From Adineta vaga (lineage: Eukaryota; Animalia; Rotifera): a stretch of 64,000 bases of DNA. Location: positions 868,001-932,000 of the forward strand of contig CP075494.1 of NCBI GenBank assembly GCA_021613535.1. The letters run 5' to 3'. The position numbers and the translations under genes are program-made. A model generated the notes under the pieces. The model was given only the letters and a program-made list of their open reading frames with translations. It ran no database searches and was not told where the DNA came from. The first letter of the stretch is position 1. Every line of letters starts with the position of its first letter. This document shows positions 17,535 to 42,830 of the stretch, one piece after another.

Positions 17535-17794
17535 TTAGTAAAAAGCGAGTAATAGGAAAACTAACCATTGTAGAAACTGTATTGATTTTGCAAGTTTACG
17601 AATACCGTCTGAATTTGAATGTGCATCTCGACAGAATGTTTCGTTATTACAACAATTCATGAATTTTAATACTTTGGGAGTACCTGGAGATATGTATGTT
17701 ACATACAAATCTTTATTTTTATCGAATACGAATTTTTCTTTAACGGCCATCCATAGAAAGTTGATCAAAATTTCATCTTGATTTGTATTATTGC

Positions 17795-17827
<33 letters not shown>

Positions 17828-19884: not shown

Positions 19885-19886
19885 TA

Positions 19887-21129
19887 TTAGGTTGTCAACA
19901 AAGTTCTGTCGTTTTTTTCTAAAATCTTGTAGAACAACCAAGAAAGTTCTAGAAGTTTCCATACTAAGGGTATATATATAGGACATGAATGTCTTTTGAA
20001 TGATAAAAAAAATCGTTGATATGGACGTTGATGTCGAGTCAAAGATGAATCTTTCTCATAGAGAGGTTCGAGTGCTTTTACTTCATGAATTTCGTTTGGG
20101 GCACAAAGCAACGGAAGCAGCCAGCAACATATGCGGCACGATGGGTCAGGGTCTAGTCTCCACTCGTACCGCGCAACGTTGGTTCAATCATTTCAAGAAT
20201 GGCGATTTAGAACTCGACGACTTACCTCGATCTGGTAGACCAATGGAAGTGGGTGTGGACTTTTTAAAGCAGCTTATCGAAGAAGATCCTCGACTGACTT
20301 TACGGTGTTTAGCAGAGCAGCTCGGATGCTCTCATACTACGGTGGAAAAACATTTGAACGAATTAGGCAAGACCTGGAAATATGGGGTATGGATACCTCA
20401 TGAATTATCGGCACATCAGCTGCAACAGAGAGTTGATGCATGTATGGATTTAATCACATCTCACCGCAACTACCAATGGTTATCCAATCTGATTACTGGT
20501 GATGAGAAGTGGGTGTTGTATGTTAACTACACGCGTCGACGTCAGTGGCTGAGCGCTGGTCAAACCGGCGTAGCAACACCGAAGGCTGATCTCCATCCCA
20601 AGAAATTGATGCTGAGCGTCTGGTGGGGTATCAAAGGAGTTATCCACTGGGAAGTTCTACCAAATGGTTACACCATCACTGCTGATCTGTACTGTCAACA
20701 ATTGGATCGGGTTGCAGAAAAGCTCAAGGGAAAGCAGGATCGAGTTTATTTTTTACATGACAACGCTAGACCACATGTAGCAAAGTCGACCCGTGAAAAA
20801 TTATTGAAGCTCGGCTGGATTACCATTCCTCATCCACCTTATTCCCCTGACTTGGCTCCAACAGACTACCATTTGTTTCGATCTCTTTCGAATGATTTAC
20901 GTGATAAAAAGTTCGACGACGAAAGCGATGTCAAAACGGAGCTTGTCAAGTTCTTTGATGAAAAATCCCAGGACTTCTACGAGCGCGGGATCATGTCTCT
21001 GCCAGAGCGTTGGCAACAAGTGGTAGATAGTAATGGTAAATATATATCTGAAAACTAGTTGTACTTTTGAAGTGAAAAAACAAAAATAAAATTTTTGAAA
21101 AAAACGCCAAAACTTTGTTGACAACCTAA
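19887..21129 (+). mobile_element. Full-length mariner transposon (about 1.24 kb)
   Basis: TA flanks at 19885-86 and 21130-31. TIRs of about 31 bp, TTAGGTTGTCAACAAAGTTyTGkCGTTTTTT. Confidence 0.97.
20000..21058 (+). CDS. Mariner DD34D transposase, intact
   Basis: WIPHEL, TGDEKW, HDNARPH and YSPDLAPTD motifs. There are 34 residues between the second and third Asp. Confidence 0.97.
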   Translation: MIKKIVDMDVDVESKMNLSHREVRVLLLHEFRLGHKATEAASNICGTMGQGLVSTRTAQRWFNHFKNGDLELDDLPRSGRPMEVGVDFLKQLIEEDPRLTLRCLAEQLGCSHTTVEKHLNELGKTWKYGVWIPHELSAHQLQQRVDACMDLITSHRNYQWLSNLITGDEKWVLYVNYTRRRQWLSAGQTGVATPKADLHPKKLMLSVWWGIKGVIHWEVLPNGYTITADLYCQQLDRVAEKLKGKQDRVYFLHDNARPHVAKSTREKLLKLGWITIPHPPYSPDLAPTDYHLFRSLSNDLRDKKFDDESDVKTELVKFFDEKSQDFYERGIMSLPERWQQVVDSNGKYISEN

Positions 21130-21136
21130 TATAAGA

Positions 21137-21766
21137 GAACTCTGCCAACTGCTACGCTCTGATTGACCTAATATTTTGCCGATGGGTAGGGCTCATAGAG
21201 TACGTGAAAGTCCTAAAAGGTTTCGCGCTCTTGATTGCGTCTTGCCGAGATATGGCGTTTCTAAGGTTCTTGACTGAGCCCATTGTCGTAGTCCCCTTCA
21301 AGGAGATGGAATAACCTTATTTTCGAATTTTGGCCTGAAACTTTGTGCACAGATGCATATCAATGAGACTAGCTTATCCTAAAAGTTTCAGCTTTGTCCA
21401 AAAGTCTGTAATGATTTCTGATCAAAAATAAAAATGGTGGAATTGGCCCAGTAATGGACAGGTAAATTATGTCAGCTGTTTCTCCTTGTAGAGATGAGCT
21501 GTGTGACTGAAATTTTTAGGATAAGCTAGTCTCATTGATATGCATCGTTGCACAAAGTTTCAGGTCAAAATTCGAAAATAAGGTTTTTCCATCTCCCTGA
21601 AGGGGACCACGGCAATGGGCTCAGCCGGGAACCTTAGAAACGCCATATCTCGACAAGACACAATCAAGAGCACGAAACCTTTTAGGACTTTCACGTACTC
21701 TATGAGCACTACCCATCGACAAAATATCAGCTCAATCAGAGCGTAGCAGTTGGCAGAGTTCCCCCT
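21137..21766. mobile_element. Foldback/MITE with about 255-bp inverted arms (Kolobok-like terminus)
   Basis: Arms 21137-21391 and 21507-21761 are near-perfect reverse complements. The right end reads GTTCCCCCT-TTAG. Confidence 0.85.
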
Positions 21767-21860
21767 TTAGTTTTTTTGCATCATAGCTAGAAAAAAGTCG
21801 ACCGGACTAATATATTGTCTTTTCTTCAAAAACTCTTACAGTATCTGTACTCTTTTCACC

Positions 21861-22427
21861 ATGACGCCGGCTGTGGTCTCAATCAGCGTTTCAATGCTGT
21901 TTTTTCTACTATTTCCGTACTGCTCGAGTGAAATGTCGCTACTAAAGAGCGAGAATCCAAATGCACTCGAAGATACAGTATGTGATCCTTTCACGGCAAC
22001 GATCAATGACTACCCTGGTGTTTTGACCCGTATTGAAGTTGTTCAGACAACACCTATCAAGTTAAAGGCATACTTTCGGTTGCCAAATAGCAATCAATAT
22101 ATATCAGTTGAAGGCATTGCGGGTTATGCGACAAATGTGGTACCGTCACTTCCGAACCTTGCTCTATCAGTGACGTGTCGATCTTTGAACTGTAGTCAAG
22201 TAACTGGTCGAAGCCTTGTTTCTTTGAACCCTGCGGGAACTACATGCAAGTTTACCTGCCCCGATGGATCCGTTGGACTTCAACAATGTGGTACCATTCT
22301 CGATCTTTCTGCAATAAGATGCCCAGTCGATGCGATGAGCTTTGCCGAGTGCAATTTCAACAGTTTGTTTCCGTCAACTATTCGGGGTGTTACTGTAATC
22401 TGCTCAGAATGTGGGGAAGATCCATAG
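21861..22427 (+). CDS. Secreted cysteine-rich protein of unknown function (188 aa, intronless)
   Basis: Signal peptide, 10 Cys in the mature region and higher GC than the host genes. No family recognised. Confidence 0.7.
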   Translation: MTPAVVSISVSMLFFLLFPYCSSEMSLLKSENPNALEDTVCDPFTATINDYPGVLTRIEVVQTTPIKLKAYFRLPNSNQYISVEGIAGYATNVVPSLPNLALSVTCRSLNCSQVTGRSLVSLNPAGTTCKFTCPDGSVGLQQCGTILDLSAIRCPVDAMSFAECNFNSLFPSTIRGVTVICSECGEDP

Positions 22428-22874
22428 GTGTCTTCTTTTTTTTAAAGCGAACCTTTATACGATTGATTGGCGTTGCTTTTTTGTTTGTTTTTGTCTCCTT
22501 TGAACCATTCTAGCCCATTTTTGTCAGAAACCGTATGTGCTACAACTTAGCTACAGGAACCTGAAATGTACCCTCGAATTCGTAGATATGAAATCCGATT
22601 CTTCCGGTTCATTTTCATCTTTCCTTCGTCTGCTACGACGAAAACGGTGAATGCAGCTAATTCTTACTTGATGTTGGCACAGGCGCGCAAAAAAAGAAGA
22701 AGAGAAGTGTAGATGGAGCATCAGCACATTATCACGTGAGTGTGATGCTATTCGAGGATGATAAGATATACAAACAGAGCGTTCACAAAGGTTGCCAGAG
22801 GGTGATGATCATCAAAAAGACGTTGCGCCGCTTCTCGCAAGGTGAGAGTGAGTTTATAAGAATATTCTAAGCTT

Positions 22875-22923
22875 CTTACGACGAACGTTTCGGATCTTGC
22901 TTAGGGATGCATCATCAGGTAAG
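22875..22923 (-). ncRNA. Type I hammerhead ribozyme (Athena 3'-end module)
   Basis: Minus strand: cttac-CTGATGA-t-gcatccc taagc aagatcc-GAAA-cg tt cg-TC-gtaag. Stem I is perfect and stem II imperfect. Followed by CTCACTCTCACC (22841-22852). Confidence 0.8.
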
Positions 22924-22952
22924 TTTAGAATGTAATTAATCTGCATGAGAAT

Positions 22953-22992
22953 TGAGTGTGAGGGTGAGTCAAGCTACCATAATCTAGATTTC
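22953..22992 (-). ncRNA. 3' half of a hammerhead plus telomeric tract, interrupted by a piggyBac MITE
   Basis: Minus strand GAAA-tctaga-TT-atggtagc-ttg-ACTCACCCTCACACTCAA is nearly identical to the 39071-39112 terminus. Confidence 0.7.
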
Positions 22993-23167
22993 TATATTGG
23001 TTTAACCCTTTGCGGCCGGCTATCAGAAAACAACAAGAAAGAAATGTTAATATTGCATATTCTTTGTCTTTTATGGATGAGGGTTACGCAGTTCCAGCAC
23101 CAAGTTTAAAGAACTATGACTGGGTCGTATGTGAATATGTTGCTTTTTGGCAACATCCGGCCGCAAA

Positions 23168-23695
23168 GGTGCAAACAGGTCAGAAAAGTCACTCAATCGC
23201 CGCCCACGGAAATCTAATAATTTAGTATTAGTTGTAATCTATATTGTCAAAGAAAAGCGTATTTGGTTCATCTGCTCATTTCACGGAGGGTTATGGTACA
23301 ATATATCTCGATAACACTCCAGAACTGATAAAAAAAACTATAAATTTCATCAATTTTATTAAATTTTTCTACAATCGTTCACCAATTCACTAAGATTCTG
23401 CCAAGATCTGTAATGTTTTATGACAGTCTTCATAAAAACGCTATGGTGTGCTGTATATTTTGTCGAAATCGTCCCAAATCGGCAAGAGATTGTAGAAAAA
23501 TTCAATAGAATTGATGAAATTTATAGTTTTTTTATCAGTTCTGGAGTGTTATCGAGATATATTGTACCATGACCCTCCGTGAAATGAGCAGATGAACTAA
23601 ATACGCTTTTCTTTGACAATATAGATTACAACTAATACTAAATTATTAGATTTCCGTGGGCGTCGAGTGAGTGACTTTTCTGACCTGTTTGTACC
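23168..23695. mobile_element. Foldback MITE with about 205-bp inverted arms
   Basis: GGTGCAAACAGGTCAGAAAAG... pairs with ...CTTTTCTGACCTGTTTGTACC. The arms are near-identical. Confidence 0.85.
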
Positions 23696-23717
23696 CCAGG
23701 TTGGATTAGATGTTGTA

Positions 23718-24053
23718 GTCAAGGTTTTGCTGGTCAGTTTGTTAATTCCAATAGACATTGTTTCAGCATGTATTTTGTAGAGAAATGTTTGCTCTATCTT
23801 CCTATATATTTCAAAGTTTCTTAGAAGCTTTCATTGTTGAGTAATTTGGAAGATGAAACGAACGGGACCAGATTTGCGGGACCAACCGGGACCAAGTTGG
23901 TCCCGTTCGTTTCATCTTCCAAATTACTCAACAATGAAAGCTTCTAAGAAACTTTGAAATATATAGGAAGATAGAGCAAACATTTCTCTACAAAATACAT
24001 GCTGGAACAATAATGCAACTATTGAATTAACGAAATTACCAGCAAACCTTTGA
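23718..24053. repeat. Long palindrome (about 150-bp arms) with GGGACCA repeats in the centre
   Basis: About 23718-23869 is the reverse complement of about 23898-24053. The right flank ...GCGCACATCTCTA resembles a hAT terminus. Confidence 0.8.
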
Positions 24054-24764
24054 CCGGGAACAGAAAATTTTTTTTTTGGTCCCGCGCACATCTCTAGGCT
24101 GGATGTTGCCAAAAAGCAACATGTTGATATTCTGTTGCTCGAGCATGCTGATTAATTGATCTTATAAGTCTAATAGATAGTGTAGTTAGGTACGAAAATT
24201 AGCCACTAATCACTTCTCACATAGAGTGCTTGGATAAATGATAAGGAGATCATCTCCACCCCGAGGCGGTTTTGGGTGTTTTGGAAAAATTTATCGTACT
24301 AGCCAACAATAGACTTCTTTTCTTGCAAATACATAGATTTGTGCTAAAATAAATGTTGTTAATTATCAAACACCTTAAGAAACTATATCGTATCGATGTA
24401 AGATAAATCTTACACTGACATGGATCAAATGTTGCCAAAAGGCAACATCCGGCTGGAAAGGGTTAAGTTGGAGAATCTTTGAAGCCGTGTGTTAATAATT
24501 TGTTCATTATTTTTATTTTTATTTGGCAGGAGTCTTTATATAGTATATATCTTAAATGGAAAAAGTAAGAGTTCAGTTATGGATTATATTTGATAAATGT
24601 AGAATAGAAATTTGTCAGAAACAAATATAATGATTGAAAAATGGTGGTGGATGAAGAATAGTATGAGTAAAATAAGTCAATAGAGTTGAGTTGAAGATAA
24701 GGAAAAAAAAGAAGAAAATGTTTTTAAGTCATCAAATAATATTTGTAATTATTAAGAAGGAGAA

Positions 24765-25067
24765 ATTAATTTGCTTGTGCTGGTGTAGCCTTTGAAACGT
24801 TTGATACTGTGGATTTGTTTCTTCTGTAGTGTCTTTCTATTTAAATATGAAAAAAAAATCGACAAATATGTATATTGAATAATATGGAAGTAATTTGTCA
24901 CTCACTTTGGCGTGGTTTATTTTTCAATAATGTTTCTGAAGGTTTTTTTCGTATAAGTTCACGTGCTGCATTTCGACGATTTCGATTGCCTACAATCATT
25001 TTAGCATTTTTACTAACTGATTGATCGAAGATATCTTTATGGATTTGATCTAAGCCCTGTTTCATCT
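24765..25067 (-). pseudogene. 5'-truncated Athena RT C-terminal fragment capped by telomeric repeats
   Basis: MKQGLDQIHKDIF...MIVGNRNRRNAARELIRKKP aligns with MRRDLHQVHEDIL...VTVGNKIRRNANHELIRKHP of the RT at about 34140-34270. Confidence 0.85.
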
Positions 25068-25095
25068 TGAGGGTGAGAGTGAGGGTGAGGGTGAG
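25063..25095 (+). repeat. Telomeric cap between Athena fragments
   Basis: CATCT-TGAGGG-TGAGAG-TGAGGG-TGAGGG-TGAG. Confidence 0.9.
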
Positions 25096-25528
25096 AACAA
25101 TTATCACAAAACTAGAAGTTTTTCACTATTCATAGATAATAAGATTATTGGTTGGATGGCGTTTATATAAGTTGCATTTTTGTGTGATATCTGCCAATAT
25201 AGTGGATAATTGAATAATTTGTTGTGTTAAGTTGTAATAAAGAAAAGAAGATATAAAGAATGAAGATGTAATGCATCTGGTGAGAGATGAATCAGGTTTA
25301 GGTGTGGAGCAGAAGTATAGTTGAAATAAGGTTGAATGTAGCTTTGGTCGTTGAATGATAAGTATGCGGTTTGAAATAAAAGTTTGTGTCATCTGAAATG
25401 AAAAGAGGAAATACAGTTAATGTTTTTGTTTGTCAGTGCTTGATTCTGGATTCTAAGAGAATGAAGTTAGGAAAACGTTAAGTACAAGAAATGAAAGAGC
25501 TACAAAGTATTTTGAACCTTTCACTTTT

Positions 25529-26265
25529 TTATAAGGTGTAATGTAAAAGATAATAATCGAGATATTCATCATGTTCGCGGTCGTCATCGTCGGTAAGTTC
25601 GTCGGAGTCAGTTGTGTCATTTATTTTTGTGAAGCAAGTGGAAAAATCTTCGTTAGATTGAACACGTTGTTTCACAGTTGGTCGGCGTCGTTCTATAATG
25701 TTCAACATTGTGTCATCTGGAACTGACGAAGGATTTGTCTGCTTATGGAGTAGAAAGTATTGCTTTTGTTTTTCAATGGCTTGTATGTATTCTTCCACTT
25801 TTGCTTCTGCTAATGATATTATTTTAGCGAGAGAATGGGACTTGAATACGCCAAAAGTCTGTATTATATGTGTTTTATGAACCATAAAGTGTTCTAGTAT
25901 AGAGTATGCTTCGCGTTTGTTTTCATCAAGTAGTTGACGCTTAGCTTTACTGATCATGTTAGTTAACTCTTTCGGGACCGGTGACGCTTTAAAGCGTCAT
26001 TGAAATTTTATACGATCTGGTGCAAGTGAATTCGAATTTTTCCCGGATCTCTTCGAAGTAAGAAAGATAAAGATGCGGATCATAACACAAACGTGTAAAA
26101 TAAAGCAACCGCAACATTTACTTCGAAGATACCCACCACAGATTCGAATTCACTTGCGCCAGATCATATAAAATTTCAATGACGCTTTAAATCGTCACCG
26201 GTCCCGAAAGGGTTAAGTAGTCTAGGCATATCATATTTTTCCAAAGGTCTACAGCATAGTTGATC
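25529..26265 (-). pseudogene. Athena/Terminon coiled-coil-type ORF with acidic tail, split by a MITE
   Basis: Removing the MITE and one TTAA restores ag|INYAVDLWKNMICLDYLTN-MISKAKRQLL.... Confidence 0.65.
25967..26212. mobile_element. piggyBac-family MITE
   Basis: TTAA duplication at 25963-66 and 26213-16. TIRs of about 70 bp, CyCTTTCGGGACCGGTGACG.... Confidence 0.92.
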
Positions 26266-26285
26266 TAAAGCAGATAGAAGTAATT

Positions 26286-26319
26286 TGAGGGTGAGGGTGT
26301 GGGTGTGGATGAGGGTGAG
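26286..26319 (+). repeat. Telomeric tract at an Athena 3' junction
   Basis: TGAGGG TGAGGG TGTGGG TGTGGA TGAGGG TGAG. Confidence 0.92.
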
Positions 26320-26334
26320 TTTTGAATATTAAAC

Positions 26335-26386
26335 TACCACAATCCGGATTTCGACTTTTGTTTAATAAGTCGATCATTAGGTGGTA
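26335..26386 (-). ncRNA. Degenerate type I hammerhead ribozyme
   Basis: taccac-CTAATGA-tc-gactt attaaacaa aagtc-GAAA-tccgga-TT-gtggta. The core G5 is mutated to A, so it is probably inactive. Confidence 0.75.
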
Positions 26387-27017
26387 AGAAAGAAATCTGC
26401 ATGATAGAAAATTTAATTTAACTTTTTTGAAATTATAAAAATTCCAAAGAAAATTAATTGAAATTTCCTAAAGAAGAAGAAAGTAGTTATATTCCAGGGG
26501 TGAGACTGGCGACGGTAAACTTTTTCGAGTTGACTAAAGTTCTCATCAGATGGTTTTTTGTCTCTTATATGGTTTAATAAGGAATCAAATTAAGCTAATT
26601 TACGTCTAATAAATTCAGTAATAAAACTATACTCACGATAGTAAATAATATGTAAGGTGGAGTGAGAGACATCAAGTACTGAGACACTTGATAAGTTCTT
26701 AGAATCAATTCGAACTAGACTCTAGTGATTGATCATGTAAAATTTGTTGTGGTTGAACTGTATGGTTGTATAGCATAAGATATTGGTGCTTGATTAGAAG
26801 TTGCTTTGTTTTTATTATTTTCTTTAGGTATAGGCTATACTGTTATGTGGATTAAATCTAGAATAAATGAAAAAGAGTAATGAGAAAAGTAAATATGTAA
26901 GACAATTAAAAGAAAAAGATGAGTAGTTCAATATAATAAAGTAAAGAAAAAGGAAAGTTTATTATTTTACATTGTAATCAGATGATTGTATATAGGATAA
27001 AGATAAGTTTTGGTTAT

Positions 27018-27930
27018 TCATAAGCTGGATTGAGTATTATCATCTTCGTCTTCATCACTGTACTTCGAATCAAGCTTCTCGAATTGAGAAAGAACTTCTT
27101 TAGCATATTCGTCCGATACGTCGTCATCATCTCCGCTAGTTTTAAGAATTTCGATAAATTCATCCATCAAATGGTGTTGATTTAAGAGAATAATATCTTT
27201 CAGTGAAAAATGCATATGATACTTTATTAAAGTAAGACGTTGGTGGCGTATAATTAAGTTATCAAGTGAAGTTTTATCAGAGGATAATAACGATGTTGTA
27301 GATAAAGACATGACTGAACCTATTAGTGGTTTAGTATGAATATCTAAAAGATAAAAAGTATAGATTACATACAAATAAATGAAAATACATAAAGAAAATG
27401 ATGAGAATAGTAAAATGAAATGAAGTTTATCTATGAAATAACTGATTTATGTGTTGACCTAAAATATTAGATAAAATAACAATAAGTAAATGAAAGGTTT
27501 GACTTTAAGATAAACTTACTTATGGATTGATTTCTGTTGAGACATTATTTATGGTATCAGTAGTTGTTCTAAATCGTTTTGATGGTGACTCTTCTCTATC
27601 GTCATCTGTGTCTGTATCTCTATCTGTATCCCGATTTGTATCCCCATCTGAATCTTCATTTGGATCGTCGATATCACTAGAAACCTCATACATATGAGAA
27701 TACCGTTCTTGGTTATATTCACGTTCTCCAAAAAGTGCAACTATTTTATCCATTAAGTCTGCATCGACTAAACGCTTGAAAACATCGTCGGACATGTAGC
27801 GACAACCATGTTTTTGTAGTATCCAATGTTGGTAATCTTCTCTATCAAAATACCGTGGAATACGACTAGTGACTGTAAATGCTGCTTTTATTGCTGATAA
27901 TGGTGTTGGTTGTTTAATTAATTCAGGCAT
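27018..27930 (-). CDS. Terminon-associated acidic ORF(s) of unknown function, spliced
   Basis: Two exon-like ORFs are co-oriented with the HHR at 26335. The SRIPRYF motif resembles RIPKYL and RKPMYL in the neighbouring coiled-coil ORFs. Confidence 0.5.
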
Positions 27931-28759
27931 TGTAGTAAGAAATCTAGAAAGTATGAAAATGATTAAATGAAGTTCTTAATAATAAGACATAAATATAGAA
28001 CATAACAATACAGTCTTCAGTTGTATTTCTATCAAGCTCATTGAATTCTACAGTCTCATCAAGTAGTGGTTTGAAAAATCAACATGATTGAAGCAAAATA
28101 TATATCTCAAATTAAATTGATAAATCAAATCAATAATTTCCAATATATGAATCTATGCAAGTGAGGAACGAAAGAAGAAGAATGAAAGATACAATCAAAA
28201 GTTTCTAATTTAGAAAAAAGTGGATATTTTGAGATATCAATGATTGTTCTCCTATATCCTGTTGAATGATGAAGTTTATTATGTTTTATTGGAGATAGAG
28301 TAATTGTGTATGTGTAATGAATATGTTTAATATTGGTAATAATAATAATAGAATAGTACAATAATTTCAAACAATACATACTTATTTATGATATTAAGAG
28401 AAAACTAAATGAAATTAGAAGCATTTTCTAAAGAGAAAATATTCATATACTGAGAGGGAATGCAATGATCTATCTAAGATATAGTCGCATATATATAGTC
28501 GGAAAAGAGAGAGACAGAGAGATAGTAGAGAAATTCTTGGATTTTTCTCATTGGTGGAAAAAAGTATTTCTTAGGCGAAAAAAAGCCAGAGATAATATAA
28601 ACAATTGCATGAACAGATTGAATCCATAAATGATGTCATGATGATGTCTTCATTAGTTTGATAGACCTTGAATTCTGATTGTAAAGTTCTGTATAGATTG
28701 TTATAGTATGTTTATGATTCGTTTATTAGAATTATTCGAACTACTATAGCAGAGTTGAA

Positions 28760-28813
28760 GCCAACTGAGGAGTTAGTCTTTTCGGGGACTAATGAAATCC
28801 TTTGGATCTTGGC
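28760..28813 (+). ncRNA. Type I hammerhead ribozyme, intact-looking
   Basis: gccaa-CTGAGGA-gttagtctt TTCG gggactaat-GAAA-tcc ttt gga-TC^ttggc. The predicted cut is after 28808. Confidence 0.92.
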
Positions 28814-28820
28814 ATCCGAG

Positions 28821-28865
28821 ACTCACACCCTCACCCCCAGACTCTTACCCTCACACCCTCATCCC
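28821..28865 (-). repeat. Reverse-complement telomeric tract immediately before the Terminon ORF1 ATG
   Basis: ACTCACACCCTCACCCC...CTTACCCTCACACCCTCATCCC, then T-ATG at 28867. Confidence 0.85.
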
Positions 28866-28866
28866 T

Positions 28867-30196
28867 ATGGATTTTAACGACGATGATCATGAGAATGATA
28901 TTTATGATGTTAACGTAAGCAATAATTCGATTACTTTGAAAGACAAAGCAATTTTCTATTAACAATCTAATTTATTTTTTAGCCAATCGACGAAAAAGTT
29001 CTCTCACAACAATTCGATCATTTATCTCTCATCGACATTGATAACCAACCAATTACATTAAAAGAGATCGATATCGAACTCAATAGAATTCCAAAATACT
29101 TAATGAAACAAAATCAATCATTGAAGCAAATGATATGCCATGCACTCTCTACAATACCTGTATCACCAACGACAACAGCAACATCAATAGAGTCTATGAA
29201 AAATCTACGAAAAATTACAATTTTGATACATAAAATAATGATTATCGAAACGTATCATAATCTATGGACAATTAATTGATGAACCGACAGGTTCACAATT
29301 GAACAAGTATCTCGTAAATTTACCTATATGGCCAAAAGAAATTAAAGCAATGGCATGGCAAAAAGATGTTACTACGGCTACGAATTTAGATGAGCGATAC
29401 GAAAATACAATCTGTACGAATTTTGTCAATAATCTTTTACAAGAACTTACCGAACGTTTAAAATACTATGAAATTGAATTGGAAAAGACAAAATCTACTT
29501 TCATTAATTTTACAATAAATAGTCAACAGATAATTGAAACCTATATTATTAACAATCTTCAATGGTTACGTATGAAAGTTCAACATAATATTGAACTCAC
29601 GTATTATGATTATCATATTCAAGCAATAAAATTAGAATACTTACGATATAATCCAAGTCCATATCAAGTAAATAGTTCTTTTATTTTTGTTATCTAAATT
29701 CAGTTTTCTTTGCATTCTTCATTATCGACGTTTATCTTCTTTTTAGAAACAATTAATGAAAGAACTTTGTAAAGATATGTATGAACAAGAAGTAGCTGAA
29801 GAGCAATATAAACTACTTCAACAACAAATTACCTTCTATACTTCATCAGATCAAACGTCATTATTCGAATCAATATTGTCAATTGATCATTCGTCATTAA
29901 TTCAGTCCATTCAAAATCATGCCATTCGAGAACGTTTATATGATCAATATAAAGAAATTGCTAAAGAATCAAGAACTAAAATGTTCAATCTCTACTTGAA
30001 AACGGCTGAAGATGAAAAAAACCAATGTCAATATAAATATGCAGCTAGTATAAAGAAAATGTGGTCAGAGCGTAATTCAGCTTCTGACAATGAAAAAACA
30101 CCAATGGTTATGATTGATCTCATTACTGAACATTGTAAGAAAATTAGTGAACGTATCAAATATATATACAAATTTCGAGGACAATCTATTGAATGA
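28867..30196 (+). pseudogene. Athena ORF1-like coiled-coil protein, spliced, disrupted
   Basis: MDFNDDDHENDIYDVN|PIDEK...RIPKYL...WPKEIK..., with heptad-rich helices. Stop/frameshift near 29275. Confidence 0.75.
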
Positions 30197-30341
30197 AATT
30201 ATTCACGAGAATTTGAATTGTAGATATTTGTTAATTAAATTCAATAAATCTTTCTTCTTCGATTCTTTTCAGATATATGTCTGTTTCGTGAATTTATTTG
30301 TAATATAATCTAGATATATTGATAGTCTTTTGTAACCTATT

Positions 30342-33300
30342 ATGGATGTCAATTATAATATTACACGAAATAATAATCCAGTCGTACATCAAGACGTCTT
30401 AGAAACACAGCAGCAGCGGCAGCAACAACAACTGTCACGACAACAACGAAGACAAAAATCTCATGGCAATCGACGTAATCAACGTTTCCGAAGAAAATGT
30501 CGTGCACAAAATATGAAACCAACTAAAATAGAAAAGTTAATTTAGAAACGAAATCGTGTCAAAAAGGAAAATACAAACAATAACGAGAGGAATCTACAAA
30601 CGGTAACATCGAATCAAGAAATAGTTACTGAAGGAAATACACAAGCAGTAACGGTGGTAGCAACGACGACAACAACAACACCACTCTCACAAAATGAAAA
30701 TAAACGTAAACGAGATGTTTCGTTCCTAGAACTGAAAACAAATTCGACAATAGTACCTAAATTAACAAGTTCAACATCTTTTATAGAACCTTCATCGAAG
30801 AAAAAGAAAATCAGTATTGATAATCTTAATCTATTTATGAATTATCGGTGAGTTTCTATCAGTATAATATATATAGGATACAAGTATGTGTAAAACACTA
30901 TTTTTGTTTTGTTTCTTATATTATAGAAAACCTATGTATTTGGATCGATCACCTACAGTACTTTTTCAAATGTTGCATAAAATATTAAATTATACATTAA
31001 AAACAAAAGATGAGAAAGATTTTATTTATACACGATTAAATCCATTAGACCAACACTATTGTTTAGAAATTCATCGACAATTATGGCAATCCTATTTCAA
31101 TATCGGTCAAGAGAAGCATACATTGCCAGTAAGTTTATTTTTTTGAAGAAAAAAAATCAATTCTCTCTTTTCATTCTCTTCGTACGAAGACTCAGCTTCA
31201 GATTATGACAAAGACAAATGACTTCAAATTATGTCAGCAATATTTGCTTGATTATATTGAAGCAATTAGAAGTCAATCAGAAGAATATGAAGAGGAATTG
31301 AACAGACAAATACAATCATGTCCGATAGCAGAATTAACAAGTAATCAAATTGATTGTTGTCTAAAAGAAATTGTTGATTGTCAACGAAAATATATATCGA
31401 TCAAAAACAATAGAGAAATATTTGAATTCAAAGAACGTATAAGCGAAAACGAGCTGTTGCAATCGATATGCACATTTGAATTCACAAATGAACAAGTAAG
31501 TTCTAACTCTCTGTGACTTTTTTTTCTCTCTACACGTGTGATTATTCTGATCTTTGAACATGTCTTTATTTTAGAATGAATCTTTTCAACAACTACTAAG
31601 TATACGACAACAATCAATGAAATATTATGAAGAACTTCTAATGTTTGAAACACGAATTTTATGCAAGTTTTTACCATTAGATTTCATTCAATTAGAACAT
31701 TTTATTGCACCTATAAAGTATAAACCCTTTATTCATCAGCACAAATCAATTCAATTTAATAGTAAATATCATAAAATTATACAAGATGGAAAACGATTGT
31801 GGTTAAATATTTTAATACATACTTATGAGATCAAACTACAAGAATATGATCAACAATATCAAAATGAATTTTTACGATTCGAAAACAAATCACAATTATT
31901 AACAGATACAGCCTCGACAGCAGCAACAACTGCTACACCCCTTGTTCCTATAGATGATCATTCTTCTAAATCGATAGTAGACAAAATTAAAGAATATTTG
32001 AATTATCGTACACGTAGCTTGCAACGAGAAATACATGCCAAAATTCCATCTTTTCGACGAAGATTATTACAGAATCGTCAACGTTCATCATTGATAAAAA
32101 CAGCAGTAGATGTTTCTCCTGAACCATATCTTGATTTATATTCGAATCCGTTCAATAAGTGTCAATGGAATCAACTTTCATTAGGTAAGAAAATAAGATG
32201 AATATATTCTTTTTCATTTTCATATCTATTGACATATGTAGATCCATCTTTTATAAGAATGAATCAAACTGCACTTCGTCCAAAAGACCAACAGAAGGTT
32301 GTAATCGAAACAGAATATAAAGAAATTTATCGAACAGCAAAAAATCATCTTATTTCCCGTCCGCATCATGTTTCATCTGAATCACCTTATTTCAAATTAT
32401 ACGCACATCAACTTCAGACTTATCTTAATCGTTGCTACTTTTCTCCAACATCCTACAAAGATCATATTCAAGCTTTACAACAAAAAAATATTACCAGAAG
32501 TATTCGAGAAAAAATAAAACAAAATAATCTTATTATTCGTCAAACTGATAAAGGTCATAATTTTTATATTGGTTCAGCAATCGAATTCAAGAAAAAAGTC
32601 GAAAAATTCTTTCAAGATACAAATGCTTTCATGGAATTATCTGATAATCCATTCAATGAAATTCAAAGTAAAGTTATTAACTTACTTAATCGATTACGTC
32701 AAGAAGAACCTATTTCCCAAGAACAATATAAAATAATGATGTTCGGTCGTACGAAATGTGAATTAGCTCATTTATATTGTAATCCAAAAACGCACAAAGC
32801 AAAAGTTTCTTTTCATCTTTTATCAAGCTTTCATAATTTATGGAGAATGTGACTTAGGATGATATACCGGTATGACCAATTGAAAATACTATATCTGCTC
32901 CAACTACAGATGTATCGAAATTTTCAGATAGTATCATAGGACCTATATTCAATAAAGAACGTCAATTGACAAATCTTATCGATGGTACTTCGTTTCTTCA
33001 GAGAATATTAAATTATACAAATAAAGATCTTTTAAAATCCTCAACTCTTTTTTGTACATTTGATATTCATAATCTTTGTACCATCTTACCACAAGACGAA
33101 GTTCTTGATATTCTTGTAGAATTTCTTCGAATACATGGATATAGAAGTGTTGAACGAATTTCTCTTGATACAATAAGACAACTAGCTTCGGTTGTTATTA
33201 AAGAAAATGTTTTTGTTTATGTAAAAAAAAATTTATCGACAGATTCTTGGTGGTGCAAATGGGTTCATCGTTTACTTTGACTTTGGCTAATATATTTATG

Positions 33301-34444
33301 TGGAAATGGGGAAAAGAATTCGTACGTCTACAAGATATGACTGGTGAATTTTATGGTCGGTAAATAGAAAGATTGAATAGTTGCGAATAACATTTATTTA
33401 TGAATATTTCTATACTACAGTTATATAGATGATATTTTTATCACATGGAATCGATCAGAACAAAGTTTAATTCAGCTATTAAATGAAGCAAATACATGGC
33501 ATCCAAACATTAAATTAGATTATAAAATCGGTTAAAGTCTTTCATTTCTTGACATTCTTCTAACAAATAATAATGTGGATCTACTTACATGTGTCTATGA
33601 TAAACCAGCAGCTGAACCTTATGTTGTACCATTTATCTCTGATCATCCACGACACGTCTTTATTAATATTATCCAAAATCGTCTTGCATATGCTCTCAAA
33701 TATTCATCGACTTTTGAATCATTCAATCAAGAACGCCGATACATTAAGTTAATGTTATTATATAACGGGTAACTTTTGTCTATCAGTCAATATTCTGCAT
33801 AGTACTTGTTTTGTTTTTCCTCTTCTAGTTACCCTTCAACATTCATTGAAAGTGAATTTCGAAAATTTTTTCATAAATACATTTCGCCATCATCATTACT
33901 ACCTTTTATAATTAATGAAAATCAATTTTCTGTTATGCGTAATACATTATTTCCTGAACTTGGAAATCGTCAGACACAAGTAACTGAAATCATTGCACTA
34001 GGAGAAGAAGATGACGACGACGACGCCAACGATAAAACAACAAATGTAGAACAGCAAAGAGAAATATTATTCATAAATAAACAAAAAAAGGACGAAACTA
34101 AATTGTTTATTCATTACACATATGAACATCGTTTAAAAGAAATGAGACGAGATCTTCATCAGGTTCATGAAGATATATTAAATCAGTCTACAAACCAAAA
34201 TATTAAAGTGACAGTGGGCAATAAAATTCGTCGAAATGCAAATCATGAACTAATTCGTAAACATCCAAAACGAATATTATTGAGAAATCAACCACATCTT
34301 AGTAAGTCATATGAAAATTAATGATATACTCTTTCTAATCTATAGTTCTATAATTATTTTTTTTATTACCGTTCAGAAAGACTACGTCAATTAGATCAAT
34401 CGTCAATTACCAAGAAACCTTATAATGGACAAACAGAAATATAA
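30342..34444 (+). pseudogene. Athena reverse transcriptase (long N-terminal coiled-coil plus PLE RT plus thumb), multiple introns, stops and frameshifts
   Basis: IRQTDKGHNF, LYCNPKTHK, FCTFDIHNL (motif A), frameshifted QILGGAMGS (motif B'), YIDDIF at about 33422 and KPAAEPYVVPFISDHPRH. Confidence 0.93.
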
Positions 34445-34728
34445 TTGTAAAATATACCATCTTTCGTTATATTCAATTTGCTTAACAATATTTCGCAACA
34501 ACCGCTTTATCCACAAAATAATGGAAATTATCTACAACTATACTCTGTTCTTCCATTGCTTATTATGAAAACCTATTTTCCACTTTCAAAGAAATATTCT
34601 ATATACCTATGATTTTTTAAAAATCTCTGTTATTATTCAGAACATGAAAATAAAACGAAAAGAGAGCTATATGATTCCGTTTGATTTGTATTTTCTTTCC
34701 CTTTTAAATAGTCATCTGTAACTTATTT

Positions 34729-35998
34729 ATGTATGATAGTAATGTTTTTCATTTCAGATTATCACACTTGAATAATATGGAGTATTTAAAATTTGTCTAT
34801 CCAACATATCTTCAGACGTTCAGCGAAGCTTTATATTCGGCAATACTTCCCTCAAGACCTAAAGGATATCAACATCGATCAACAAAACCTAGAAAATATG
34901 ATTTTAATCCTGTTAATCATACAATACCCGAATCTTTTCTGGAAGATGGAAAAGAATTCCTATCTACAATCAATACAACAAATCTTATAAATGATCATAG
35001 CAATAAATCTATCTCTAATTTAATTGCAACTAATGTAACTTTTCCATGGACTACGACTGATACAAATAATTCGAATTTTAATCTCCTCCAAAATGTAACA
35101 ATAGATGATTATTATTAATGCGATGCGAAGAATGAGCTGAGCATTACTGCAGTGCTTCTTGATTTTTCTTTTTTTATTTCCTGACTCCTTTCTCGACGTA
35201 CGCATCTCAAGTCCTCATTTAGTTACGCGATGATCTCGAGAACTGGACATCAGAAAAATTTCATTCAAAAACAAAATAAAAATATCGAAACTCTACTTGA
35301 AAACTCTGTAAACATAATTTATTTGTGACGTTCTATACGTATGCAGGAAGCTCAGAAAAAGACGATTTTGACTGTTAAATTTTGTGAGATAATTAAAATC
35401 AAGTTGTTAAGAAGAAAAGCTAGGCGCGAAGTTCGTTCCACAGATGTTTTACAGCTGATAGCAGCATACATGAAAAAAGATAGAACAAATGATGATTAAA
35501 ATCATCTTAACGAATGCTAATCGCATCGCATTCTGTACTAGAGTGAAGCTCGAGTACCCTCTAGTTCAAGTAGCAATACGATGAAGAAATATTTTAATTC
35601 GTTTGTTTATTTTATACGACTACAAGAATCACATCTATGGAAATATGTTCTTTATTTTACATTTATATGTGTTTTGTTGTTTATACTTCGAACAATAATT
35701 CGCCATGTTAATGCTTTTTATCGAACTTACTTTCATACATATGACTATGATAGTCATTCACATGGTATGTGGTCTTCAAATAGTTCTATTTCTCTTCTTT
35801 TTTTGTAACAAACCATGTACATTCAAAACATTTTTCTGTATAGATCATTCGACTTATTCGCAATATTCAGTAATACCAAATGAAAATGACATTTATCGAA
35901 GCAATACTGAGTTTCAACATAATGATCAATCTTCATTGGCTTCAAATCAAATATCATTAGCTGGCACAGTCATTACGCTTTTCCCTAAAACTGTATAA
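34729..35998 (+). pseudogene. Terminon cargo: single-pass membrane glycoprotein-like ORF split by a Helentron-like insert
   Basis: Excising 35110-35565 joins ...NVTIDD-SSSNTMKKYF...WKYVLYFTFICVLLFIL in frame. N-x-S/T sequons precede the TM segment. Confidence 0.6.
35110..35565 (+). mobile_element. Non-autonomous Helentron/HINE-like element
   Basis: Inserted at T|T with no TSD. Subterminal IRs ATGCGATGCGA (35118) and TCGCATCGCAT (35521), and a 3' hairpin ACTAGAG...CTCTAGT. Confidence 0.75.
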
Positions 35999-36250
35999 AT
36001 CATTTGATTTTCACATTATAATCCGACAAGAAGTCTTAGAGAAAACATGTCTCTTTTCATATCTAGAATGTGTGTAGATGTTATATAAGTAGGAGTGTCT
36101 TTTTGTACATTAGTTACGAAACATTTAATCAAACTATGTGTAATATATCAATATTCTTGTAAATAAATGAATTTAAATAAACATTAGAGTTAATATACTT
36201 TTTCTTCTTTCATCATCTTGTATACTTAAAGTCTTTACTTATTTCAGATT

Positions 36251-36955
36251 ATGAATACGAATAACAGTCAAATGAAACATACGACATCAGAACCGTTGAT
36301 TTCAAATAATGAAAATCAAACTGATATTCATTTACTGATATCTATGGAAAATGATACTGCCAATCGACCATTCTTACAATCTGCAACAGCTGATAGCGTT
36401 TCGAATCGAATATCATTGGGTCAAGCTCATTCACAATACAATAATACCCTCCGACCACGACATGCACGACGAGGTAGACGACATCAATATAAAACAGAAC
36501 AACGACGATTTTCATCGCAATATATTAATAGTGAACGATACGAACGATCGATAGAACGACAACGTCGAATTACACAACAATCACTACACCATAATAGTCA
36601 CTTTCAATATCACAATTCATTTGTCGATCGAACAGATCAAATGTCTTATGAATTATATTTGCAGACGGATGAGCATAGCAATACTAGAGGCGATTATGAA
36701 CAACAAGAACAAGCAAATGAACTCAAAGAGCTCGTTACTCAAGAACAATTAGTATAATTACAGGCTAAAATTGAGAAAATGGATCTAATTGATACATTTG
36801 ACAAAGAACAACAACAACAATTAAACAAACTTCAACGAGCAATTATTCCACAAGAAATAGCAATCGTAGAAGACGTAATCGAACAAATAAATCAAATTAA
36901 TCTGACACAAAGTACGCACCAAGAAGACGAAGAAGAAAAAGAAAAACATGAATGA
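36251..36955 (+). pseudogene. Terminon cargo: Arg/Gln-rich basic plus acidic coiled-coil ORF
   Basis: RPRHARRGRRHQYK... The frame continues past an in-frame stop at 36755-57 with E/Q-rich helices. Confidence 0.55.
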
Positions 36956-37260
36956 AATACGCAGCTAATTTATATTCGCTACAATGGGAACATCTAATGT
37001 ACTTAACTCAATAATCAAATCGAGATTATGCATTCAATCTACTTTAACACATAATTCATTAACTATTTTCCATTTCTTACAAATACTCATTCAACATTCG
37101 ATTCAAAAGTTTGCAAACAATCTATTCCTTATCGTGACTCAATGTAATATTTATATTATCTCAAACAAATATCTTCAAAGCACACAAATTATATATAGCT
37201 GATGAAAAATATCACGAAAATATTTTAAATAAATCTTCTTTCATATCCCAAGTTTCAATC

Positions 37261-38450
37261 ATGTTACAATTAATATTATTTCTTACCGTTTGTTCTTCTC
37301 TTTTATACTACTTATATCTCTAAACAGTCCCTATAAAAATGTGTAGCCATTTGATGAAAAATCTAACGATTTGAAAGAATATCTTCTTGGTAAATGTATT
37401 TACTTCTCTATCATGAAAGGTAAACAATTATTTCAGACTTTGTAGAACACTTTTAAATAAATCTAAATTTTTCCATTGAATTTTAGGCCGTAGATGATCT
37501 AATGTCATTAGTAGATCTTCGCAGTTACCATGATCTTCGATACGGTATCTTAAAGAGACTCACATTCTAAAGATTAGTTTACTTCAATTTATTTCTATAC
37601 ATCAACTTCATCCTGAATTTCTTTTTATTATTTTTAGATTTTTTGTTCATATCATATATTTCTATTGATTTCGAAACATCATGACTACCTACTATATTTA
37701 TCGCAACGATAGTCATTCCTATGGCTTTAATCGACCACTCAACCTTAGCACTGTATTCAACACCGATCTGGATGAATATTTGGCACATGTATATTTACAT
37801 CAAATGAAAATCAAACCACTTCGAGTAAATTGTACGGTAGCTCCGCTAGCTGAAGGTTGTCCTCTCGCAAATGTATCTACTTCTATGTCGAATAAAACTC
37901 AATTAGTTCCAAATTCTATAACAAATAACTACTATACAAATCTGGCACAACAACATCAACAAATTATTATCATTAGTCTGATATTGGTTTCCATGCTGTT
38001 AATATTACTTATATTTATTATAAGGAAACTTCTTTCAAAGAAAATCCGATCTGATGCACTCACATCTATCTCGAGTGGTGAGTTTTCTTTTCGATTTATT
38101 TCTTTATTCTTACAAATATACCACAGAATGAAAAGAACTATTTAAACACATATTTATATAGATATATCCAAAAATTTGCCCATAACGAATGATCCCAGAT
38201 TTATGCATTATGTTGATTGCATCTCGGAGTATTCTGATCGAATGAGTGTTGTGAACGAACAAAATAATAAATCAAACAAGAAAGTAAGTACATTTAACAT
38301 GATGCTAATTATATTTATTGTTTCAAAACTATTTTATTAAAACTTTGTAGATCATCCAATCATATGACTACGATTATCTTCCATGCCATTATCTTCAACA
38401 AAATGAAAACAAACTACCTTCAAATCCTATCCTCATGACTTCCAATTAAA
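37261..38450 (+). pseudogene. Terminon cargo: second single-pass membrane protein ORF, spliced, decayed
   Basis: Signal-like start MLQLILFLTVC.., Cys pair NCT..GCP, TM segment IIIISLILVSMLLILLIFII followed by a basic RK stop-transfer. GT-AG introns. Confidence 0.55.
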
Positions 38451-39041
38451 ACATATCTTCTCACTTTGTTCGATTTTTTCCAACATGTGTTAATTATTGT
38501 ACAGAATGACTAGTGTTTTATCATGCAAATACGTTTGATTGTCAATCACTTAAAATAAACTTATCTTTTTAACATATTATCAATTGTTTATTACCCAATT
38601 CTTATGTTCCCAAAGAATAGCACATTCATACCATCATTGTATATTCTGCTTTTAAACGTGATATATCACAAAATCGTGACACAAATTTAATCGGACTACT
38701 ACTTACGAAATGAGAACACATCAGATTAGTTGTTCAAATCAAGCCATTCGCTAGACTCAATACGATAAACCAGAACAATCATTCCCTAATCAAAACAATC
38801 TATAAATATTACCCTCTTGTAATAATTAGATATGCTATAGAATCTACAACAAAAAAATATACCATAACACTTACTCTAATCTCTCCGAGCATTAAATTAT
38901 ATCATGAATTTCCTTGTACCACTATAATTCATAAAACAACTAAATATCCCTTTTCGATTGAAACGATCCTTTTGAATATCTTCGGATATTTGAAATAGAT
39001 CGAGTTCGTTACTTTTGATTTTTTAATCGAAATGTAAATAT

Positions 39042-39088
39042 TACCATCTGATGATTCTCTTTGCCGAGATGAAATCGCGATTATGGTA
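39042..39088 (+). ncRNA. Type I hammerhead ribozyme at the Terminon 3' end
   Basis: taccat-CTGATGA-ttctc tttgcc gagat-GAAA-tcgcga-TT^atggta, with a palindromic stem III. Confidence 0.9.
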
Positions 39089-39094
39089 GCTAGT

Positions 39095-39116
39095 ACTCAC
39101 CCTCACCCTCAAGATG
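39095..39116 (-). repeat. Telomeric tract anchoring the Terminon 3' end to host DNA
   Basis: ACTCACCCTCACCCTCA-AGATG, which reads CATCT-TGAGGG-TGAGGG-TGAGT on the minus strand. Confidence 0.88.
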
Positions 39117-39501
39117 TCCATGTCTTGATTTCGGCGCATTTTGATGCACTTTGATATTATCTTTCCTTGCTTTTTTTCTATCGATGGATGGGTATATAAA
39201 CGTGTGTCTTATATTAGAACGATGCGATTATTGAGAGGAAGAAATAAATATAGGCGCAGTATCACTTCCATCAAAAAACGTCACATTCAGTAACATAAAA
39301 TGTATTTTTTGTATTATTTCTTTTTGTGTAAGGCAAAATTACGTTTGATAAATTTTCGGCGAGAACATACGAGATATATCCAATATATGTTCTTAACACA
39401 TAGAATAGGCTAACTCAATGATTTACTTGAATTTAATCCAGCAAAAAATAAGTTGATAGTCAAAGGGCTAAATGTAAAGATGTAACAACAAAGCGCATTA
39501 A

Positions 39502-39875
39502 CCCTTGTAGTAACAAGTAAGCCATTTTTGACCCATATCAAAAAGTTTGAAAGCAGAATAGAAATTTTTTGTCACTCTTTTTTTCATTCCTTGATTAGTC
39601 TTTTTTATTTCTACTATCGGATGATATGATCATTGGCATGTTGGCATTCATATGCGCACGTTCTTTCTAGAAGTGAAAAGATAATATCTTCTGATGTTAT
39701 ACTTGGTTGACGGTTCGATAATTCATAAAAAGGAAATCTTTATTTTGACTTTCTTTATCGAATCGAATATGAGGGTAGCATATTATGACTTAAATATTCA
39801 TGGAAAAATAAATAAATGATATAACAAAAGCGTATACTGCTAGTGAAATGCAAAAAAGGCTCGGTACTACTAGGG
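39502..39875. mobile_element. piggyBac-family MITE
   Basis: TTAA-CCCTTGTAGTA...TACTACTAGGG-TTAA. Confidence 0.8.
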
Positions 39876-39951
39876 TTAAACCTAACGAAAACTAATACTC
39901 TAGTTACAGATTGTTGCGCTTTAAAGGAAACAAGTTCTACGAATCATATGT

Positions 39952-40785
39952 TTATTGTTCATTCATCACTTGCGGTCTTATTCGATTAGGACAGCAACAA
40001 GACCATGGATAATGTCCATTTTTTTTCTTGTACATTGATATGAAGGCCCACAACCATGCGACAAAACCCAGGCAAAATACGATTATCAAACATATTTTGG
40101 CTAATATAGATATTTGCATTGGACCTGTGTACTTTTGAATAACTAAAAGAGCCCCTAACGGCAGAAATGGTAACCATATTCAGCAGATAGCTTTGTAGGG
40201 CTGGTCTTTGTAGGCTGATATATAGTAGACTAATGGCATAATGGAAGAGATAATACCAAGTAAACCTCCAGAAACACCAATAACGTCAATTACATCACGA
40301 GCAGTTTGGTATCTGAGGATCCATCCAAAACACCACGCTTCTTGAGCAGCGCTGGGAGACATTGCGATATCACCAGGATTACAATAGAATGAATAGTTTC
40401 CATAAAAGCATTCAACTGGATACTCGGGACACGGATCACCGATAACCACACCCACGCTGGCTAACACGCAGCCTTCAAATATGATCGTCAGAAGAGTTGC
40501 AAGTATTGAACTAGTTAAAAAGTAACTGACACAGCTCGTCCAATTGGTTGATTCTATGGCATCATCGAATTCAACGTAGATAACCGTTTCAATTTTTTCT
40601 ACCGTGTCGTTCGCCTCATTGGCAGCTGGGTTTCTATCCCGACGCACATAGTGAGTGCCAATAACTTGCTTGAAAAGAAAGTTTCGAGCCTCCTTTGTTA
40701 CCAATTTCAGAAACAGCCCAATCATTCCGAAGAAAACGACTGGAGCTACATAGGATATAACACCATAAAGGAGTCCACGGTCCAT
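39952..40785 (-). pseudogene. Multi-pass membrane protein with one in-frame TGA
   Basis: The 201-aa ORF continues in frame after TGA 40180-82 (IWLPFLPLGALLVIQ...KICLIIVFCLGFVAWLWAFISM...) to TAA at 39952. Confidence 0.7.
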
Positions 40786-40885
40786 AACTGAATAGCTAAA
40801 ACAAATGAGAAGACATTACTACTTTAGTACGTCACTATTGAGTGATCAACAGAGATGAGCAAATCAAGTCTCACTTGACTTGTTC

Positions 40886-41188
40886 GAGGGCTGTGCAAAT
40901 ACCAGTACAAATTGTACTCTGGATTTTGTTAAAAATCCTGTCTATCAGATAATGCTAGATTCACTGACTTTGTACTCCGATGTACTGTGATTTATCATCA
41001 TCTACTCTCATGTACTGGCATGTGTTGATCTACTTTAAGTCTGAAAAAGTTAGAATCAGTTAGCTTGTGCTGTCATGTACTCAGTACATGACAGTACATA
41101 ACAGTATATGAGAATACATGTGTATTCGATATGCATGTTTTATAACAAATTTCACAGTACAATTTGTATTAGTATTTGCGCAGCTCTG
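40886..41188. mobile_element. hAT-family MITE
   Basis: 8-bp TSD ACTTGTTC at 40878-85 and 41189-96. TIR sAGrGCTGyGCAAATACyArTACAAATTGTACT. Confidence 0.9.
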
Positions 41189-42769: not shown

Positions 42770-42830
42770 TAGGGTGAGGGTGTGAGGGTGAGTATTATGA
42801 AAATGTAATCCTACGACCAATGGTTTCGAC
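42770..42830 (-). ncRNA. Truncated Athena 3' module: half hammerhead plus telomeric tract
   Basis: Minus strand gtc-GAAA-cca t tgg-TC-gtagg...ACTCACCCTCACACCCTCACCCT. The CUGANGA half is absent. Confidence 0.65.

Follow-up and report, generated by a model that had tools for sequence, protein, structure and literature searches.

Penelope-like elements (PLEs) deficient in endonuclease (EN) use free 3' ends as primers, either at deprotected telomeres or at double-strand breaks, and their truncated 5' ends are then capped with telomeric repeats (PMC3846280, PMC8557442, PMC6431247). These three papers, summarizing Gladyshev & Arkhipova (2007) and Arkhipova et al. (2017), describe the Athena/Terminon chains at bdelloid telomeres as having an EN-less PLE reverse transcriptase (RT), a hammerhead at the 3' end with telomeric repeats in reverse complement behind it, copies truncated at the 5' end under short telomeric caps, head-to-tail stacking, accessory helical and transmembrane open reading frames (ORFs), and host or other DNA between units. 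Here we analyze a block with these same features at positions 22841-39112 of a 64,000-nucleotide stretch of the rotifer Adineta vaga genome (the window, with a G+C content of 31.8%; C5:868001-932000 of assembly G000, which comprises 100.8 Mb in six contigs). Unlike the described chains, the block lies internally, on a chromosome of 16.9 Mb whose left end is 0.89 Mb away, its two stacks meet 5' to 5' without a telomeric tract, and all of its pieces are decayed. Because of this distance from the chromosome end, the block is a former end structure and not a current one. Its component parts are textbook Athena/Terminon, while an internal 5'-to-5' joint of two stacks was not found in the literature searched, in which the only work pairing "head-to-head", "telomeric repeats" and bdelloid concerns the inverted repeats of EN+ Penelope elements.

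Other systems offer partial likenesses. The head-to-head repeat arrays at human 2q13 are the scar of a telomere-telomere fusion; here, as in such scars, the G-rich strands of two chromosome-end structures converge where these meet, but the meeting point lacks inverted telomeric arrays and the polarity alternates repeatedly. In L1 twin priming and in endonuclease-independent L1 insertion at breaks, both ends are primed and the cDNAs are joined mid-way, leaving a repair patch. Reverse transcription primed on both break ends and a patch of retroelement cDNA would be common to that process and to this locus, whereas the arms observed here come from different elements and each consists of several successive additions. 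For A. vaga itself, interstitial telomeric repeats were suggested to mark an ancient fusion in AV20 (PMC8494291). Neotelomeres at induced breaks of this species, for which holocentric chromosomes have also been proposed, carry telomeric repeats and Athena fragments on broken ends, as our block does; these were found at deletion breakpoints, and chromosome fragments are inherited over generations, which would permit several additions on both sides and makes multi-round capping of the two sides of a break plausible (PMC13564844). That study observed transient scars in reads and proposed their homology-driven removal, whereas here the caps are kept, the ends were apparently joined without homology, and the structure is fixed in the genome.

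The block is composed of four minus-sense pieces, stacked left to right and each anchored by its 3' end to a G-rich tract, and of two plus-sense pieces, stacked right to left from an anchor on the right. The distal (5') sides of the two stacks oppose each other across about 2.2 kb that hold no telomeric repeat. An initial annotation of this DNA, made from the letters alone, had proposed this polarity, with the minus anchor on the left and the plus anchor on the right, and our results agree with it. The telomere-type tracts are mixes of TGAGGG and TGTGGG, of which shuffled sequence yields only 0-0.03; within the block, the plus strand is G-rich at 22841-22852, 22953-22969, 25068-25096 and 26285-26319, and C-rich at 28821-28864 and 39095-39112. 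The explanation that we favour, and to which we give an even chance, is that opposed healed DNA ends were rejoined here, as part of a recurrent cycle of breakage, healing and rejoining in a dynamic subtelomere.

Piece 1 of the minus-sense stack (22841-22952) is a 5'-truncated fragment of about 110 bp in which the G-tract is followed by a reverse-complement hammerhead core (22888-22918) of the same family as the minus-sense end at 49819-49846. Piece 2 (22953-25067) begins with a G-tract (22953-22969) and a half hammerhead (22977-22992), its 3' end being 88% identical to positions 39071-39111, and it terminates in the C-terminal end of an RT (24901-25067), whose last 56 residues share 50% amino acid identity (E 7e-15) with the RT tail of the plus-sense unit at 34139-34306. 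This RT tail stops at 25067, flush against the tract at 25068-25096, which caps the 5'-truncated piece and opens with an ATCT/TGAGGG junction. The interior of piece 2 is filled by nested fold-back (hairpin) elements, with palindromes at 23168-23695, 23757-24011 and 23000-23176. Piece 3 (25097-26284) contains a helical ORF (the "CC ORF", 25529-25957), for which the ESM Atlas returned only weak helical look-alikes and the genome a single paralogue, 83% identical, in the chromosome 3 subtelomere, together with a fold-back miniature inverted-repeat transposable element (MITE; inverted repeat I3) at 25960-26219; read depth at 25920-26290 is that of high-copy sequence. Of piece 4 the 3' end (26285-26452) is recognizable, with 71-78% identity to about 10 other Athena 3' ends, and it consists of a G-tract (26285-26319) and a reverse-complement hammerhead (26349-26380) whose core is mutated to CUAAUGA (normally CUGAUGA); judging by this sequence, the copy is probably no longer self-cleaving. 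The fold-back elements nested inside the Athena pieces (23000-24060 and 25960-26219) have arms of 102-169 nt with 88-99% complementarity, and one of them splits a hammerhead. The tracts, the hammerhead, the half hammerhead, the truncated RT and the cap at 25068 are thus all where the initial annotation had them.

The plus-sense stack had been said to begin at 28760. Its sense is as described, but the stack opens with only an Athena 3' fragment of about 180 bp (28679-28864), preceded by an unrelated 220-bp repeat. This fragment, with a hammerhead core at 28765-28797 and a C-tract at 28821-28864, is 74-81% identical to sequences at C2:16231522, C3:1195772 and C3:444142. It is followed by a 10-kb unit of the Athena/Terminon type (28862-39112), with helical ORFs at 29299-30196, PLE-type RT pieces at 32202-34318, which are interrupted once by a frameshift (near 33200-33280) and once by a stop (at 33533), further ORFs downstream, among them a transmembrane one (37681-38145), a hammerhead core at 39048-39074 and a C-tract at 39095-39112. 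The N-terminal RT piece has as its closest proteins reverse transcriptases of bdelloids (Rotaria), at 56% identity (E 2e-61), one homologue having RVT_1 directly downstream, and RT motif C gave a weak RVT_1 match in Pfam (E 0.014), which was the only match of the Athena ORFs among the 30 ORFs searched. Pfam detected neither GIY-YIG nor any other nuclease in the 10 ORFs of the plus-sense unit, a search that decayed remnants might escape.

Hammerheads were called by core-box patterns, and the core boxes (CUGANGA...GAAA) adjoin the tracts of the block at 28765-28864, 39048-39112, 22841-22918 (minus) and 26285-26380 (minus). Rfam models (RF00163 and its clan, at the gathering threshold and at E up to 10) matched no hammerhead in the block, and the only match in the window reached 22.4 bits, with a threshold of 34, at 49804-49852. 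Helices I and II fold in three of five hammerhead motifs, with weak fold z-scores of -0.5 to -1.7. The hammerheads of PLEs are minimal variants that escape standard models (PMC4209133). From their sequence, the plus-sense unit and the other pieces can be classified as an EN-deficient PLE of the Athena/Terminon type by their RT, hammerhead plus tract, truncation caps and chains. The structure is old, a fossil: a frameshift and a stop interrupt the RT, the core of one hammerhead carries a mutation, and pieces 2 and 3 later received insertions of fold-back MITEs.

The two stacks were originally thought to meet at 28.4-28.75 kb, with no tract between them. The absence of a tract was borne out, as no telomere-like 13-mer was found from 26320 to 28820 with one mismatch allowed; the zone itself is more complex, and comprises 2.0 kb of single-copy DNA (26453-28458) and the 220-bp subtelomeric repeat (28459-28679), with the 5'-to-5' meeting point falling between 27930 and 28679. 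The single-copy DNA has ORFs on the minus strand at 27520-27930 and 27018-27374. Its open frames of 151 and 142 codons are found on that strand only, the longest plus-strand frame being 62 codons, and the 142-codon frame was matched in 1 of 2000 shuffles of the zone. No further copy of 26453-28458 was found in the genome at the DNA or protein level, and the first of these ORFs (searched as 27520-27927) had no homologue but itself among 5.8 billion proteins; the search of encoding contigs was also blank, and the ESM Atlas held no usable match. This centre may represent either the body of piece 4, the last minus-sense unit, with which its ORFs are co-oriented, or a captured DNA fragment. The 220-bp repeat contains TATATATA, (GA)n and ATTGG, and bears TATA-like and CCAAT-like motifs. 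Its copies at C3:4160, C3:71734, C3:866167 and C6:13831141 do not adjoin a hammerhead, a telomeric tract or Athena ends. The idea that this repeat forms the 5' end of hammerhead-terminated units was rejected, the supposed cores in loci L003 and L004 being coding sequence.

The joint is real DNA. The region 25000-30500 was compared with contigs from four sequencing runs of four studies (2013, 2015, 2021 and 2022), which carry one organism label and derive from one laboratory clone lineage, so that they represent independent sequencing and not independent evolution. In each run a single contig of at least 3467 nt spans 26162-29628 with 0 differences, and its depth equals that of neighbouring contigs. 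No alternative allele or heterozygous site was found across 3.4 kb of this contig (26472-29600) in the four read sets, and the locus is therefore homozygous, as a loss-of-heterozygosity tract, or hemizygous. The assembly contains no second copy of the joint, and this uniqueness argues that it is not one composite element. The initial annotation had named an assembly chimera and the existence of other copies of the junction as the two findings that could overturn it, and both are now removed. As it had also indicated, no duplicated flank was detected around the block.

Direct evidence on how one of the chains started comes from its right anchor. The plus-sense chain abuts a truncated MITE (39113-39290, plus strand), with about 40 relatives in the genome at 73-79% identity. 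Full copies are 45-70 nt longer and include the left terminal inverted repeat, in whose place we find the C-rich tract; this replacement shows that the chain was begun on a broken, non-telomeric DNA end. The proposal that both chains grew on free ends and were later ligated is to this extent supported, while the ligation of their distal ends is a step that we infer. The flanks are not the plain non-Athena genes they had been taken for. Both are rich in transposable elements, with a mariner, an inverted repeat of 255 nt and an orphan ORF to the left, and on the right, in addition to the broken MITE, another Athena 3' fragment 3.7 kb beyond the block (42770-42850, minus), in which a G-tract is followed by a degenerate hammerhead. 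This minus-sense end makes 39113-42769 a body of 3.7 kb with healed ends facing outward on both sides. DNA searches of the assembly with both flanks returned transposons only. The nearest host genes on each side belong to large multigene families whose best paralogues are 39-47% identical. Chromosomes 2 and 5 of A. vaga are homoeologous (PMC8494291), and a protein search found no paralogues of the flanking genes on the homoeologous chromosome.

The same organization extends beyond the block. The whole window has 13 telomeric tracts and three convergent joints, the plus strand being G-rich in the tracts at 440, 11161, 22841, 22953, 25068, 26285, 42770 and 49767, and C-rich in those at 13774, 15657, 28821-28864, 39095 and 60674, so that the polarity changes at least five times along the 64 kb. 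A second body with outward-facing healed ends at both sides (15673-22840) is framed by the tract at 22841 and by a C-rich tract without a hammerhead outside the block (15657-15672, plus). The window therefore has at least two convergent joints besides the one described here, which does not represent a single whole-chromosome fusion. The initial annotation had also considered a simple fusion of two chromosome termini; given the repeated changes of polarity and the mixed orientation of Athena ends in the genome, this does not fit. In one of the other joints, between the facing G-rich and C-rich tracts at 11161-13789, there is an ORF of a rhodopsin-type G protein-coupled receptor (11665-12612), that is, a host gene caught in a convergent joint.

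In the haploid chromosome-level assembly of A. vaga, the subtelomeres are rich in transposons, prone to rearrangement and hold most rearrangements (PMC8494291). A strict hammerhead-plus-tract pattern has about 55 sites in the genome, all of them subtelomeric, with 0-2 for a control pattern, and Athena 3' ends are oriented with and against the chromosome arm about equally often. The genome-wide search for other convergent Athena pairs, suggested in the initial annotation, returned at least five hammerhead-plus-tract pairs spaced 4-40 kb (C5:1844308/1847985, C3:2151411/2160178, C3:19714810/19727185, C3:568628/593152 and C2:16194852/16231604). On a smaller scale, micro-pairs in which a G-tract is followed after 4-34 nt by a C-tract have 506 pattern matches genome-wide versus 5 in the reverse order, a ratio of about 100:1. 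Such an asymmetry is predicted by the head-to-head joining of telomere-tipped ends, because a double-capped body of 4-34 bp is impossible. Head-to-head micro-pairs concentrate in subtelomeres, examples being window positions 440-494, L014:3748-3807 and 3996-4053, and L015:3194-3245.

The start of the tracts is also recurrent in sequence. Among 34 distinct TGAGGG repeats that open a tract, 11 are preceded by ATCT, whereas chance would give about 0.2; these tracts include those at window positions 11161, 25068, 39112 (minus) and 440 and those of loci L013, L014, L015, L030, L035 and L036. At 39112, the broken MITE contributes the sequence ...CATC, to which TTGAGGG was added. This recurrent start points to a template with a fixed alignment site, which may be the telomerase RNA or an Athena 3' end.

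The mechanism that we consider most likely for the favoured explanation has two steps. In the first, two DNA ends of opposite polarity each served, with their free 3' ends, as primers for reverse transcription of Athena, and telomerase capped the 5'-truncated copies; this is established for the family and is shown here for the right end, which starts inside the broken MITE. In the second, distal ends that were uncapped or eroded would be united by end joining, in which a captured fragment may have come to lie between the two. A wider reading, which we put forward tentatively and hold to be rather doubtful, is that the whole window records, in fossil form, chromosome fragments of a few kb or more which were stabilized at both ends by Athena/telomerase neotelomeres and then re-ligated, and that the micro-pair excess reflects a regular end-bridging pathway in bdelloids. 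In such a pathway the reverse transcriptase could switch from a short template of Athena origin to the G-tail on the other DNA end, and the ATCT/TGAGGG start of the tracts would reveal the site at which the template aligns.

Several observations weigh against the rejoining of healed ends. The same map is obtained by inverting 22841-28458 within a uniform plus-sense chain. At the joint, there is no telomeric repeat and hence no classical fusion signature, and the single-copy 2.0-kb centre cannot be assigned to either chain. In the minus-sense chain, a core-box pattern scan of the third piece (25097-26284), with the CC ORF, found no hammerhead on its 3' side. The lost part of the MITE is neither on the left flank (22840) nor anywhere in the window, although it could have been removed by resection, and nothing found here shows that the two flanks were once contiguous; the haploid assembly offers no empty site or sister locus for comparison, and the four read sets share their clone lineage. 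With Athena ends oriented about equally often in both directions, convergent neighbours are to be expected in about a quarter of adjacent pairs under any mechanism. Finally, the spacers of the micro-pairs group into a few recurrent sequence families, so that part of the 100:1 excess possibly reflects copying or a shared template and not independent joining.

An inversion would have acted on a single plus-sense chain at the end of the left arm, a 5.6-kb segment of which (about 22841-28458) was later turned around, either through breaks that were rejoined or through recombination of telomeric tracts lying in opposite orientation. When the inversion is undone in a reconstruction, a tidy six-unit plus-sense chain results, with the polarity expected for a left arm; most rearrangements of this genome sit in subtelomeres (PMC8494291), and the orientation of Athena ends is mixed everywhere. 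We nevertheless consider it unlikely, if well worth keeping in mind, as it needs a left breakpoint exactly at a unit boundary (between 22840 and 22841), shows neither inverted microhomology nor a duplication at the two putative breakpoints, and leaves the head-to-head excess of micro-pairs unexplained. Alternatively, the minus-sense stack arose at a different chromosome end, from which break-induced replication or fragment capture brought it here, in which case the two stacks never grew together at this locus. It has been proposed that ends bearing Athena can be acquired from another telomere in a break-induced manner (PMC2861651), and an identical 76-nt hammerhead plus tract at C3:92262 and at window positions 49771-49846, as well as the 83% identical paralogue of the piece 3 helical ORF in the chromosome 3 subtelomere, are compatible with traffic of this kind. 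In the assembly, however, pieces 1, 2 and 4 and the central 2 kb each occur only once, so that any donor has been lost or the event is very old, and we judge such an import improbable.

It is very unlikely that the whole of 22.8-39.1 kb forms one Terminon-like unit that has an antisense arm or a bidirectional promoter at about 28.4-28.7 kb. The repeat at 28459-28679 does carry promoter-like motifs of the TATA and CCAAT types, and EN+ Penelope elements are often inverted head-to-head (PMC3846280); against this, the joint occurs in no other copy, the arms are not homologous to each other, the internal telomeric tracts mark separate additions, and elsewhere the 220-bp repeat lies apart from Athena ends. 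A fold-back palindrome, twin priming and a PLE inverted repeat were likewise rejected, the arms not being from the same element: what they share is limited to the 56-codon RT tail and a 40-nt 3' end, at non-mirrored positions. Long-read assemblies of repeat-rich subtelomeres are error-prone in general, but an assembly chimera at 28.3-28.9 kb is scarcely credible here, given that the short-read contigs of the four studies cross 26162-29628 without a difference and at the depth of their neighbours.

Other elements of the window deserve mention. The sequence of 76 nt formed by a hammerhead and its tract at 49771-49846, identical to G000:C3:92262-92337 on another chromosome, suggests that subtelomeres recently exchanged or duplicated sequence; at a distance of 250 bp there is a gene for tRNA-Thr(TGT) (49439-49513). 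The mariner/Mos1-type transposon on the left flank (19885-21134) encodes an intact transposase of 352 aa and is probably active, because at least eight other copies are 99-100% identical to it. The neighbouring 255-nt inverted repeat (21137-21391 / 21507-21761) has arms that are 93% identical, and its sub-threshold match to a plant miRNA precursor model is almost certainly that of a mere hairpin. To the right of the block, there are two intact piggyBac-type (DDE_Tnp_1_7) transposase ORFs, at 44043-45719 (558 aa) and 52788-54263 (491 aa), the first of which ends in a C-terminal B-box-like zinc finger.

Bdelloids survive massive breakage of their chromosomes, and a recent proposal holds that neotelomeres with Athena sequences protect the broken ends for a time, until these are restored on the basis of homology. 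If the rejoining of healed ends at this locus is confirmed, it would mean that caps can be borne over repeated additions on the two sides of a break or on two fragments, that capped ends can be rejoined without homology, and that the caps can persist as permanent sequence. With the joint and the micro-pair excess, a process proposed to be transient would become countable and datable in genomes, and this may possibly explain why the subtelomeres of bdelloids are patchworks that trap host and foreign genes.

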